A model generated the notes under the pieces. It had not been told where the DNA came from and searched no databases. It was given only the letters and a program-made list of their open reading frames with translations. A stretch of 64,000 nt of DNA from positions 24,874 through 88,873 of the forward strand of contig CALSCP010000904.1 of assembly GCA_943704425.1 (NCBI GenBank), given 5' to 3'. Position 1 is the first letter of the stretch; each line of letters starts with the position of its first letter. This document shows, in pieces, positions 22,701 to 44,080 of the stretch. Source of the stretch: Ministeria vibrans ATCC 50519. Lineage: Eukaryota; Protista; Filasterea. Made by a program: the position numbers and the translations under genes.

Positions 22701-25700
22701 TTGGTCGAGCATGTGGCGTCGGTATAGCCGGGGAGGCACACGCAGAGCACAAGCAAGTTGCCGTCACCCGCGGGGAAACATGCACCCCCGTTGACACACG
22801 GCGACGAGGCGCACACACTCGGGACAGCCGACTCGCAAATGGCGCCGGTAAAACCAGCGGCACACGAGCACACAAACACCGCAGAGCCAGGTGCGGTGAC
22901 GCACACGCCGGCGTTGAGGCAAGGCGAGCTGTCGCACGCGCCACCAATAGTGGAGTCGCAGTTGGTGCCAAAGAAGCCAGCGGCACAGGTGCATGTGTAC
23001 GAAACGAGACCGTCGGTACAGGTGGCGCCGTTGGCACACGGATTGGAGGCACAGTCGTTGGTGTTGGTCGCGCAGTTGACACCCTCAAAACCAATGACAC
23101 AGACGCACGAGTAGGCACTGTTAAAGTCCTGGCATGTGGCACCGTTCTGACAGGGTGACGAGGCGCACTCGTCCAGGTTGTCGGCACACGTGGCGCCCGT
23201 GAATCCGGGCAGACACGTGCAGGTGAAGACACCAGGAGCACTGTCAGAACAAGTACCGCCGTTGAGGCAAGGCAGCGAGGTGCACAAGAGAATGGGTGCC
23301 TCGCACACAGTGCCGGTGAACAAAGAAGCACAGGTACAGCTAAACACGCCTGTGGCAACGTCGCTACAGGTACCGCCGTTCTGGCACGGGCCCGACGAGC
23401 AGGCGGGGGCAACCGAGGACTCGCACTGGAAGCCAGTGAACCCCTGCGCACAAGTGCACGCGTAGGAGGTGGGCGTGACATCGATACAGGAACCGCTGTT
23501 AAGGCAAGGCGTTGAGGCACAAGCGGGCGGCTGGACGGTCTGGCACTGGAAGCCACCAAAACCAGAAACACAAGTACACGTGTACACCTCATTGGTGAGC
23601 GCCACACACGTACCGGCATTCTGACAGGGGTTTGAGACGCAAGCCGTGGGCGTGGTCGACTCACATTGGAATCCAGTGAAGCCAGCGGGACACTGGCACG
23701 AGAAAACCGTGGCGCTGACGTCGGTACATGTAGCCGCGTTCATGCAGGGCATCGACGAGCACGGAGGCGCCTGGACCGTGTCACATGTGGTGCCGGTGAA
23801 ACCGACAGCGCAAGCGCACGAAAACACTGAAGGAGACACATTGGTACAGGTTGCGCCGTTCTGGCACGGGTTCGAGTCACAGAGAGGCGCCAAAGCCGAG
23901 TCACACTGGCTGCCCGAGAAGCCCGCAGGACACGAGCACGCGTAAGTTGTGGCAGTGGTGACGCACGTGGCACCATTAAGACACGGACTCGAGGCGCAAT
24001 TGTCAGTCGAGGTCTGGCACTGGGCACCAAAGAAACCAGGGGTACAGGCGCAGGCAAAGGCACCGGCCGCCTCGCTACAGGTACCGCCATTCTGGCAGGG
24101 CATCGATGCACAGAATGTCTGCGCTGTCTCACATGAAGTGCCCAGAAAGCCCACAACACAGGCGCAGCTATAGGCGCCTGACACCTCGGAACAGGTGCCG
24201 CCATTCTGGCACGGAGTCGACGCGCAGTTGTCCTGCACATTCTCACAGGTAAAGCCGAACACGAGAGCAGGGCAAGTGCACGCAAAACCACCGGGAGTTT
24301 CGGTACAGGTGCCACCGTTCTGACAAGGCATCGACGAGCAGAAAGCCTGCGTCGTCTCACATGCATCGCCGATGTAGCCCGTTGGGCACTCGCACGTCCA
24401 GATAGAAGCTTTGTCGACGCACACACCGCCATTCTGGCAGGGTGACGACGCGCACAACGACTGACCATTCTCGCAGAGAAAGCCCGAAACACCCGAGGGA
24501 CAAGCGCACGCGAATCCACCGACAATCTCGGAGCAAGTACCGTCGTTCTGGCAGGGCGACGAAGCACAGAACATTTGCTGCGTCTCGCACACTGCGCCTG
24601 TGACAAGTGCGGGGCAGGTGCAGGTGAACGTACCACCGCTACCACCACTGGTACAGGTACCACCGTTGAGGCAAGGCGATGACGAGCAGGGCGCCAAGTC
24701 AACTTCGCAGTTAGCACCGGTGAAACCGGTCGGGCACGCGCATGAGTAGGGTACCTGCACCTCGGCGGTGAGAGTGAGGGTCACCGACGAATTGGTGCAG
24801 AGGTTGGCAACGTTGACTTCGTTCGAAAAGGTCAGTGTAAGCGTGATGGAACCATCAACCGATCGAACTTGACTCAACTCCTGTTCGGTGACCACAACCG
24901 TCTCGCTGACGTCGGCGCAGTCCAGGCCGCCGGCAACAAAGAGTGTTTGAGACAGATTGAAGGCACCCGTGATAGAGAGCGTCTCGGTGGCAAGGCTCAA
25001 GTCCGTAAAGGCGTCCACACGAAGCTCGCCGTCTCCAGCAATAGGCGGAAAGTTGGTGAACGTCAGTTGGTAGATGTTGTTGGCAAAGTTGGAACCTGCG
25101 ACCCGCACAGATTGCGTGTAGGTGCCATTGGTCTGGCACATGCCACCGTTTTGGCAGGGAGTCGAGGCGCAGTCGTCGACAAGCTCGCAGAATCGACCCG
25201 ACGTCATGGGCGGGCAAGTACACACAAACGACGCAATGCCGTCGGTGCAGGTACCGCCGTTCAGGCACGAAGAAGACGCACACTCGTCAATCTCCGACAT
25301 ACACAGGTCGCCAGTGAAACCAAGCATACACGAGCACATAAACTCACCAAAGTTCGGCGTGGAGCAAATACCCCCATTACCGCATGGGAAAGAGGCACAC
25401 TTGAAAGAAAAAAAGGAAAAAGAAAGGACATGAATAAAATAATAATATAATTATACATAAATAATTATTATGTCGTCGTTTTTGGCTCACCTCGTCAATG
25501 TCAGTCTCGCAATTGACACCGGTGAATCCCAGCGAACAAACACAGCCAACAAAGAGGCTGCTGGCATCTTCGGTACACGAGGCACCATTCTGGCAAGGGT
25601 TGCTTGAGCACTCACCAAGGAATGTCTCGCACATGACACCACCATAGTTGGTGGGGCAACTGCACACAAATCGACCTGCCGAGCTGGTACTCAGGGCAAT

Positions 25701-43700: not shown

Positions 43701-44080
43701 TATTACGCCCTGTACACGCTGACGAGAGGAACTCGGAGGGCGATAAGAAATCTCACGAGACAAATCACGTAGGAGGGAGATAGTAAAAAAAACCAATCGT
43801 ACTTTCCCATCACAAAGTTGATTGTTTCGGCCGCCTGATCAAAGTCACCATCGGCAACGACGGTGACGGTGGCGTCGCCGACAGCCGGAGGCAGGCCATT
43901 AAAGGTCAGCGTTTGCGTGTTGGGAGCAAAAGCCGCTCCAGTCGTGTTTGCTGTGATCGTGAACGTTGCCGCTGAGGTGCACGACGCGCCGTTTTGGCAT
44001 GGGGACGACGTACACTGAGACATGCCTTGAGGGAGGCTGGCAAGCAAGCAGACGACGGCAAGACACGAGAGGAATCGCAT
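19714..44080 (-). CDS. Giant (~7,000 aa) type I membrane protein: signal peptide, ~109 EGF/cbEGF modules (21 with a nested ~120-aa domain), ZU5-like domain, TM helix, Tyr-motif cytoplasmic tail
   Basis: ATG at 44080 begins the signal peptide MRFLSCLAVVCLLASLPQGMS. About 19 in-frame GT-AG exons (approximate): 44080-43803, 43622-43033, 42724-42346, 41995-41170, 41061-40242, 40157-39863, 39480-38824, 38735-38024, 37955-37110, 37016-33815, 33752-32910, 32564-28548, 28460-26805, 26312-25491, 25399-20804, 20537-20421, 20346-20148, 20072-19885, 19812-19714. TM LYIGIAVGVICLVLIIILLVFVYY followed by KKR. Ends ...LNDEFTA*. Confidence 0.9.
20167..20238 (-). other. Single transmembrane helix of the giant EGF protein
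   Basis: 24 hydrophobic residues followed by the stop-transfer sequence KKR. Confidence 0.85.
20600..20790. repeat. (TAT)n/(AAT)n intronic microsatellite
   Basis: Directly visible. Similar tracts fill introns at ~26320-26745, 28480-28545, 32585-32840, 37020-37080, 39540-39825, 42040-42335 and 42780-43020. Confidence 0.9.
26320..26745. repeat. (TAT)n intronic microsatellite spanning an N gap
   Basis: Long TAT trinucleotide run with an assembly gap at 26427-26436. Confidence 0.95.
32585..32840. repeat. (TAT)n intronic microsatellite spanning an N gap
   Basis: Directly visible. Confidence 0.95.
39540..39825. repeat. (TAT)n intronic microsatellite spanning an N gap
   Basis: Directly visible. 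Confidence 0.95.
42040..42335. repeat. (AAT)n followed by (TAT)n inverted microsatellite (intron) with N gap
   Basis: An AAT run switches directly to its reverse-complement TAT run at ~42090. Confidence 0.9.

Follow-up and report, generated by a model that had tools for sequence, protein, structure and literature searches.

A predicted jelly-roll domain nested in the EGF modules of a giant membrane protein of Ministeria vibrans, with relatives in bacterial surface proteins

The gene and its EGF-nested inserts

The window analysed here is the whole of a 64,000-nucleotide stretch of DNA from Ministeria vibrans ATCC 50519 (GenBank assembly GCA_943704425.1, contig CALSCP010000904.1, positions 24,874 to 88,873 of the forward strand). 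A single large gene is the subject of this study (Table 1). Its exons join across 16 canonical introns without in-frame stops; at the uncertain 3' end there is a possible extra intron in the tail and a possible donor site after the last codons. As read from its sequence, the gene product is a giant type I membrane protein, the ectodomain of which is a long array of approximately 108 Notch-like EGF modules. A parse by the spacing of six cysteines (C1-C3, C2-C4, C5-C6 pattern) yielded 107 of these modules, and the host of copy 6, which the pattern missed, is the other. The host EGFs correspond to the Pfam families EGF, hEGF and EGF_CA, with PF00008 matching the long exons at E 6e-70 to 8e-74. 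An initial annotation had described the protein as receptor-like, and this is borne out by the presence of a signal peptide, one transmembrane helix with a basic stop-transfer sequence, and a short tail, all of which were read from the sequence.

The same annotation had reported a domain of about 120 aa in 21 EGF modules. We used 18 clean inserts to build a local HMM and ran it on the six-frame translation. It found 18 whole copies, each within one exon (E 1e-36 to 2e-45), and another three that are split by introns, and hence the same number, 21. All 21 inserts, which are 124-134 aa in length, are located between Cys3 and Cys4 of the EGF that hosts them, where the annotation had placed them, and each contains exactly two internal cysteines, the single pair that it had noted as usual. 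Start-to-start distances between copies are 272-281 aa, which equals one insert-bearing EGF and three plain EGFs, with exceptions of 191 aa (once) and 236 aa (twice); one insert for every four modules, mostly, was the earlier reading as well. Mutual identity among the copies is approximately 32%, and their consensus (Q-T, F-x-F, G-x-L-x-V-T-S-N-A-D-L-G-x2-T-E, F-x5-6-D-C, L-S-x-A-Q, V-x4-C and L-x-L-x-Y) reproduces the shared motif pattern that had been proposed.

Table 1. Features of the gene on the minus strand; positions are those of the window.
Feature	Position	Strand	Remarks
Whole gene	19885..44080	-	17 exons, all introns GT-AG, ~7,037 aa; 3' end uncertain
Start codon and signal peptide	44015..44080	-	22 hydrophobic residues; first insert-bearing EGF directly after; read by eye
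Copy 1, N-terminal part	43803..43978	-	HMM 4-53, E 2e-8; phase-2 intron inside domain, join restores family motif
Copy 1, C-terminal part	43426..43621	-	HMM 59-125
Copy 2, N-terminal part	43033..43224	-	HMM 2-60, E 1e-11; phase-0 intron inside domain
Copy 2, C-terminal part	42523..42723	-	HMM 64-127, E 9e-17
Copy 3	41344..41733	-	E 6e-40
Copy 4	40417..40800	-	E 2e-42
Copy 5, first 12 residues	39863..39898	-	next intron holds N gap 39644-39671
Copy 5, main part	39121..39480	-	HMM 22-129, E 4e-18
Copy 6	38202..38585	-	E 6e-40
Copy 7	37284..37685	-	E 2e-41
Copy 8	36366..36755	-	E 5e-44
Copy 9	35649..36047	-	E 4e-41
Copy 10	34821..35210	-	E 7e-41
Copy 11	33996..34385	-	E 2e-45; modelled with host EGF as 33957-34421, AF2 pLDDT 94
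Copy 12	33084..33482	-	E 7e-40
Copy 13	31917..32300	-	E 4e-44
Copy 14	31083..31475	-	E 3e-43
Copy 15	30252..30641	-	E 3e-40
Copy 16	29547..29933	-	E 6e-38
Copy 17	28722..29108	-	E 2e-45
Copy 18	27810..28199	-	E 2e-41
Copy 19	26979..27368	-	E 1e-36
Copy 20	25665..26048	-	E 9e-41
Copy 21	24743..25135	-	E 7e-39; example given in the initial annotation
C-terminal run of plain EGFs	20804..24703	-	~33 modules, broken by a non-EGF region
Non-EGF region in this run	21038-21448	-	137 aa, without Pfam match
Transmembrane helix	20167..20241	-	single, 25 hydrophobic residues then K-K-R; cytoplasmic tail ~95 aa; read by eye

The inserts might be absent from the mature protein if they were overlooked introns, an artefact of assembly, or contaminating bacterial sequence fused to a eukaryotic gene. 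The assembly of the gene does contain four N gaps (26427-26436, 32705-32708, 39644-39671 and 42216-42223), but all of them are confined to (AAT)n microsatellites of GT-AG introns. The exons flanking each gap join in frame, and as the spacing of the super-repeat is regular across the four gaps (277, 272/279, 278 and 276 aa), no hidden exon is indicated. Overlooked introns are contradicted by the 18 inserts whose open reading frame runs without interruption into the host EGF within a single exon, and also by a polyA RNA-seq run, which contained 93% of the words sampled from a 3.26-kb exon with an insert share of 48%. This run suggests that the gene is transcribed with its inserts included, on the basis of assembled contigs from one run rather than of splice-junction reads. 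Contamination is difficult to reconcile with three inserts that hold spliceosomal GT-AG introns of their own, or with the neighbouring genes, which encode Nup160, a class I PI3K and a HECT/AZUL ligase. Further evidence against an artefact comes from conservation of the inserts at the protein level, with homologues in real proteins down to E 4e-109, from the confident folding by AF2 of EGF plus insert (pLDDT 94), and from recurrence of the EGF-nested arrangement on 20 other contigs. We consider the chance that the inserts do not belong to the protein to be close to nil.

Predicted fold and comparison with known domains

AF2 modelled copy 11 together with its host EGF with high confidence (pLDDT 94, pTM 0.82). 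In this model, the insert is predicted to be a jelly-roll sandwich of eight or nine strands that includes a single helix and a single internal disulfide and replaces the turn of the main EGF hairpin. The model and its fold matches agree with the earlier guess of a disulfide-closed beta-sandwich or jelly-roll. The positions that are conserved throughout the family (Asp-Leu, Glu, Asp-Cys, Ser-x2-Val and Cys) are located in loops and are common to the window and bacterial sequences. Judged from these loop positions, which suggest that the residues may cluster in space, the conserved D, E and D-C fit a metal site; this would most likely be a combined metal (Ca2+) and disulfide site with a structural task, stabilising the fold, and not the ligand site. 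The loops are no more variable than the strands (entropy 1.90 versus 1.98), so that diversification of binding surfaces among the 21 copies is not indicated.

Laminin L4 (domain IV, Pfam Laminin_B) is known to sit between Cys3 and Cys4 of the eight-cysteine LE module (PMC5338690). The position is common to L4 and all 21 inserts, and the parallel drawn by the initial annotation is in keeping with this literature. Shared descent would require that the insert is a highly divergent member of Laminin_B (L4/LF), with a nesting that is homologous to that of animal laminins through a holozoan ancestor rather than bacterial in source. We find this very unlikely. Laminin_B (PF00052) matched neither the exons nor the 18 inserts at E up to 10 and was found nowhere in the genome at E<=0.01, and no L4/LF chains were among the best 50 structural matches in either of two VIA searches. 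The host of the inserts is a six-cysteine EGF, whereas that of L4 is an eight-cysteine LE module, and there are 21 inserts in the protein as compared to one or two copies of L4 in a laminin. Moreover, none of the significant relatives of the insert seen outside the species is nested, and where a source is named it is bacterial, unlike that of L4/LF.

A second identity that must be weighed is that of true CBM6/35/36 modules, in which case the protein would be a multivalent Ca2+-dependent lectin that catches polysaccharide-coated prey or particles. The model of the insert has the jelly-roll fold of CBM6/35/36, but the composition of the inserts (no Trp, 2.1% Tyr, no Lys) differs from that of classical sugar-binding CBMs; the aromatic residues that typically form the sugar platform of CBMs are missing. 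Identity of the insert to CBM6, CBM35 and CBM36, the N-terminal domain of PNGase F and the carbohydrate-binding domain of BcsB is 6-18%, with no profile match. CBM profiles gave no consistent result among the inserts, with 1 of 18 matching a CBM13-like profile at E 0.17. We regard this identity as unlikely.

Several other candidates were examined. The P domain (P_proprotein, PF01483) was suggested by a D-L...S-P-G-like motif and was rejected, with an hhalign probability of 0.04% for profile A1 against the P-domain alignment. There are only two P_proprotein matches in the genome, on contigs C257 and C2383, and neither is on an insert. The P domain of kexin/furin and the jelly-roll domain of the Tk-SP subtilisin are nevertheless among the nearest known systems. 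DUF4082 (PF13313) had ten genomic matches, none on an insert copy, and did not match the 18 inserts at E up to 10. The ESM Atlas gave weak leads only (best 0.87; FlhE and P_proprotein clusters at 0.77-0.79).

A large sequence family and its spread in the genome

Searches with the insert against Pfam, NCBIfam and PDB sequences found no match, Laminin_B included. The initial annotation had been unable to recognise the insert as L4, CUB or a lectin family, and its term "unrecognised" holds for the curated libraries. The domain is not, however, an orphan: profile A1 matched 693 clusters at E<=1e-3 among 1.84 billion proteins, 146 of them at <=1e-10 and 15 at <=1e-30, with a bacterial origin wherever a source was named. 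The family is defined by a significant match to this profile across the whole domain of approximately 125 residues and by the conserved loop positions listed above, which window and bacterial rows share. By sequence comparison, the insert is a member of this large family, which neither Pfam nor NCBIfam includes. The best match (E 4e-109) was MAG protein P0001, which has nine tandem copies. A remote link, at most, exists between the C-terminal half of the domain and YkcB_C (PF24878), which scored E 1e-14 when summed over the nine copies of P0001 and E 0.05-0.06, below the cut-off, for single copies, and which matched no insert of the window. A protein word search with one insert found nothing at E<=1e-5 among proteins of 737-2345 aa, at a sensitivity limited by the word index. 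When the EGF-containing region was used instead, EGF matches to Notch, crumbs and eyes-shut dominated, and the search was uninformative on the insert.

Among the best 150 of the 693 matches, 148 were not nested in an EGF. The two nested matches come from this same species (99% identical; by eye, one residue differs from the window exon). The 148 non-nested matches lie in large proteins. All source-named entries among them are bacterial surface proteins, from Acidobacteriota, Planctomycetaceae, Bacteroidota and similar groups, and are labelled as subtilisin, choice-of-anchor D, CARDB, HYR or LRR; others contain FG-GAP or dockerin domains according to Pfam. The bacterial repeat, as in MGA1825508.1, TDI50408.1 and MEZ6132743.1, is of the same family and length as the insert and shares its conserved positions. 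Among those inspected, it is free-standing, either in tandem or between other repeats, and never inside an EGF, in contrast to the nested insert. Some bacterial members are without the cysteine pair, whereas all of the window inserts have two cysteines.

The domain had been assigned to one giant protein. This protein does hold 21 copies, but the domain is not confined to it: there are at least 93 insert matches on 21 contigs of the genome, essentially all of them EGF-nested. EGF halves were present on both sides in 34 of 36 sampled paralog copies, and the other two begin at an exon edge. On a tree of 131 columns, which has a low resolution and in which the eukaryotic clade was unsupported in free searches, the eukaryotic label required 2-4 changes as compared to 32-42 when shuffled. 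A tree in which all 47 eukaryotic copies were held together had a higher likelihood (p-AU 0.73). Both results favour a single origin.

Our results are probably best explained as a whole by a single acquisition from bacteria, nesting in the EGF hairpin and subsequent expansion, convergent with laminin L4 and giving rise to a role in surface adhesion or capture. There would have been one transfer, from bacteria to this protist lineage; this is the most likely direction given the distribution among the best 150 of 693 matches, and other eukaryotes may be present among the remaining matches or missing from the protein library. The domain could nest in the EGF hairpin because its first and last strands are neighbours. 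The unit of one insert-bearing EGF and three plain EGFs would then have undergone tandem expansion and dispersal to approximately 20 loci. Recruitment of a bacterial extracellular module into a eukaryotic EGF surface protein is a feature shared with teneurins, in which a bacterial toxin-type module, gained by horizontal transfer, is reported to have been combined with EGF repeats in an ancestor of holozoans (PMC6297184, PMC13018210). The bacterial part of teneurins follows the EGFs, whereas the insert is nested inside them and multiplied.

Proposed function and wider meaning

The EGF rod may serve as a stalk from which 21 sandwiches project sideways, each tethered at both ends. At the cell surface, the protein would then likely function in multivalent adhesion or capture of low affinity, directed at bacteria, glycans or matrix. 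The main alternative, by analogy with laminin L4, is a purely architectural role, in which the inserts would have no ligand of their own and would be beads that give the EGF rod stiffness, spacing or protection, such as within a cell coat. L4/LF domains, which are suspected of such a role, have no known function or sugar binding (PMC5338690). A structural role would also be consistent with the strictly regular spacing, with loops that do not exceed the strands in variability, and with an ectodomain that is uniformly acidic and poor in lysine (4 Lys in approximately 6,900 aa), as expected of a protease-resistant coat. However, the maintenance of 21 intact copies at a mutual identity of only about a third and the spread of the module to approximately 20 loci argue for a selected surface activity, and the bacterial relatives occur in adhesin- and protease-type proteins. 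We think it rather improbable that the inserts are beads alone, and return to adhesion or capture as the preferred role.

This domain represents a new family, missing from Pfam, NCBIfam and PDB, with hundreds of clusters and a confidently predicted fold. It is ready to be added to domain libraries, where it would annotate many giant bacterial surface proteins. The inserts would be a second, independent case of a CBM-like sandwich nested at Cys3-Cys4 of an EGF-type module, with 21 copies in a single protein and more than 90 in a single genome, and bear on the origin and role of the laminin L4/LF insertions (PMC5338690). They also bear on the way in which extracellular architectures of the animal type came together in unicellular relatives of animals, including from bacterial genes as has been argued for teneurins. 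As the EGF-insert-EGF piece is small and confidently predicted, it is experimentally tractable. It is possible, although only tentatively so, that a protist close to animals has built approximately 20 giant receptors, with more than 90 copies of a bacterial domain nested in the manner of L4. These receptors would capture prey or mediate adhesion by recognising the surfaces of bacteria or algae. If this is true, the family would be a new one that bacteria share with a single eukaryotic lineage and that has a Ca2+/disulfide site conserved in its loops, and these proteins would constitute an independent natural experiment on the gain of lateral binding heads by EGF rods.

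Gene structure and predicted protein

Stop-free, cysteine-rich stretches (9-12% Cys) on the minus strand join at canonical sites into a single eukaryotic gene of 17 exons, encoding ~7,037 aa with no in-frame stops. This joined model was used for counting, while database searches were queried exon by exon. Thirteen of the 16 introns are in phase 0 and separate EGF modules, with the donor just past the acidic residues that close one EGF, usually D-x-D-E (GAG/GT), and the acceptor just ahead of the first Cys of the next (AG/TG); the remaining three fall inside insert copies 1, 2 and 5, numbered from the N-terminus. 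Long (AAT)n/(ATT)n microsatellites fill introns, and stretches rich in them have a far lower GC content than the exons (~55-60%). All four runs of N are in intronic (AAT)n microsatellites. The flanking exons join in frame and the insert-to-insert distance across each gap is regular (272-279 aa); by these two measures there is no sign of a hidden exon at the four gaps, whose lengths are estimates. The neighbouring genes encode Nup160, a class I PI3K and a HECT/AZUL ligase, which places the gene in a nuclear eukaryotic rather than a bacterial context; this set fits an animal-related protist.

Features of the gene, its surroundings and related loci
Feature	Sequence	Position	Strand
HECT ubiquitin ligase with AZUL domain	window	6198-9392	minus
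Giant EGF-repeat gene, 17 exons	window	44080 to 19885	minus
Stop-free Cys-rich stretches	window	~44290 down to 20600	minus
Cytoplasmic tail	window	19885-20166	minus
Ectodomain	window	20242-44014	minus
EGF modules scored for glycosylation consensus	window	20421-44014	minus
Non-EGF region	window	21038-21448	minus
3.26-kb exon compared with RNA	window	33756-37016	minus
N runs	window	26427-26436, 32705-32708, 39644-39671, 42216-42223	
Introns filled with microsatellites (examples)	window	26313-26804, 32565-32909, 39481-39862, 42000-42345	
Nup160	window	48111-52550	minus
Class I PI3K with Ras-binding domain	window	56159-61291	minus
P0001, bacterial relative	L021	3001-7539	
Paired insert matches	C1769 (L011)	40000-49999, onward to ~54012	
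Paralog resembling copy 5	C905:39000-44000 (L019)	1549-2286	minus

The protein begins with a signal peptide of 22 hydrophobic residues, as read from the sequence, and carries ~108 EGF modules that match Pfam EGF, hEGF and EGF_CA. The cysteine pattern picks out 107 of them and misses the one that hosts copy 6. A single transmembrane helix of 25 residues is followed by K-K-R, with which the cytoplasmic side starts, and a short tail. In the ectodomain (~6,900 residues), acidic residues (311 Asp, 247 Glu) far outnumber basic ones (4 Lys, 57 Arg), and Trp is absent. Such a composition could point to protease resistance or to a strongly acidic coat; the insert's relatives in bacteria are likewise Lys-poor (0.7%). 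The tail has several Tyr motifs. A possible additional GT-AG intron shortly past the transmembrane helix and a GT donor immediately past the last codons make the true C-terminus uncertain. Near the membrane, a 137-aa non-EGF region with an R-R-R site is flanked by EGFs and has no Pfam match at E<=0.1. The EGF consensus is C-x-S-x-P/A-C for O-glucose and C-x4-S/T-C for O-fucose; among all modules, 103 fit the former, 81 the latter and 75 both, a likeness to Notch.

The nested domain

The initial annotation described 21 inserts in the Cys3-Cys4 loop of EGF modules, mostly one per four EGFs, with a shared motif and usually one internal Cys pair, and this observation is confirmed in full. An HMM built from 18 clean inserts found 18 whole copies in single exons (E 1e-36 to 2e-45) and three intron-split copies, all 21 between Cys3 and Cys4 of the host EGF (copy 6 by eye). 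Units consist of one insert-bearing EGF and then three plain EGFs, with three units shorter. The inserts are 124-134 aa long, each with exactly two internal Cys; their consensus reproduces the motif, and mean pairwise identity is 32%.

Several observations indicate that the inserts belong to the protein: they are open, in frame and conserved as protein, have homologues elsewhere, contain spliceosomal introns in three copies, fold confidently with their host and are represented in polyA RNA. The 3.26-kb exon is 48% insert; of the words sampled from it, 93% occur in a polyA RNA-seq run from a marine sample. It had been considered unlikely that the inserts are spliced-out introns, and these data agree.

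AlphaFold2, given one EGF plus insert and a 41-row alignment that combined copies from the window with paralogous and bacterial ones, returned a model (pLDDT 94, pTM 0.82) in which the two EGF half-strands pair together with eight or nine strands and one helix between them. Foldseek and VIA-align found jelly-roll sandwiches only, at modest scores: the PNGase F N-terminal domain (9.2), BcsB (9.1), FlhE (8.1), Kex2 and furin P domains (7.4-8.2), the Tk-SP subtilisin jelly roll (7.7) and CBM36, CBM6 and CBM35 (7-8). The earlier guess of a beta-sandwich or jelly roll is thus borne out. Membership of the P domain and of DUF4082 was tested and ruled out. Residues conserved across window and bacterial copies (Asp-Leu, Glu, Asp-Cys, Ser-x2-Val, Cys) all lie in loops, which fits a putative structural metal and disulfide site; they may serve to hold the fold of the insert.

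The closest architectural precedent for a domain nested in an EGF-type module is laminin L4. Laminin_B, however, has no match in the inserts or anywhere in the genome, the host is a 6-Cys EGF whereas that of L4 is an 8-Cys laminin-type EGF, and no laminin chain is among the top structural matches. On these counts the insert, which was not recognised as L4 at first, is most probably not a member of that family. We interpret the resemblance as convergent, a sandwich with meeting ends being suited to an EGF hairpin.

Relatives and origin

As first supposed, the insert belongs to no described family: no Pfam or NCBIfam model matches even at E 10, and no PDB chain matches the insert profile. It is not, however, a unique orphan domain. 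An insert-family profile searched against 1.84 billion representative proteins gave 693 matches at E<=1e-3 (15 at <=1e-30), and for the bacterial members of this large family, too, curated libraries lack a model of the domain. The best match (P0001, E 4e-109), from a bacterial MAG, has LRRs and nine tandem copies. P0001 has a signal peptide and its LRRs are internalin-like; the copies fill its last 1,100 residues, and most have one additional Cys around the second strand. Acidobacteriota, Planctomycetaceae and Bacteroidota contribute further giant proteins, which go by the names subtilisin-family, choice-of-anchor D, CARDB or HYR. Among the best 150 of the 693 matches, 148 are not nested in EGFs; the Cys-rich ones have D-C-N-x-N-G-type repeats instead. 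The two that are nested come from the same species as the window: P0013, compared by eye, has a single residue changed relative to a window exon, and P0144 matches contig C2846 at 99% identity. The family is bacterial wherever a source is named, and was nested in EGFs and multiplied by one protist lineage.

In an assembly of this species (29.7 Mb, 2,860 contigs) the profile has 93 matches on 21 contigs. In ten sampled loci, EGF halves flank 34 of 36 near-complete copies on both sides, and the other two begin at an exon edge. The L019 paralog, on the contig numbered next to that of the window, resembles copy 5 and, like it, starts inside the domain at an exon edge; this suggests that the two have an intron position in common. 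At L011, in a 3,641-aa open frame, insert matches come in pairs with identical E-values and a constant offset of exactly 5,559 bases (e.g., 43963 and 49522); a block was either duplicated in tandem very recently or duplicated in the assembly. True DUF4082 (PF13313) matches occur at other places, on C320, C2169, C2772, C2675, C945, C642 and C2235, six above the Pfam cut-off; the genome therefore has a second bacterial-type sandwich in large open frames, apart from the insert family.

The eukaryotic label requires 4 changes on a tree of 178 domain copies and 2 on a tree of 95 (shuffled, 42 and 32), and constraining all 47 eukaryotic copies together gave a likelihood above that of the free search (p-AU 0.73). 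By these measures a single origin agrees with the data and is even favoured by them, although at 131 columns the tree is weak. The domain may have been taken up once from bacteria, then nested in an EGF and then expanded.

Proposed role

The protein is a membrane-anchored EGF rod with 21 side-mounted sandwiches, each attached at both ends, and may mediate multivalent adhesion or capture on the cell surface. The main rival is that the inserts are purely architectural, which is also what is suspected of L4. Classical lectins are a further alternative, but the inserts contain no Trp, 2% Tyr and no Lys, and their loops are not more variable than their strands. The insert itself is real, was accurately described and is unnamed in curated libraries. 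A sandwich nested in an EGF-type module is a known kind of arrangement, built here on an undescribed domain family.
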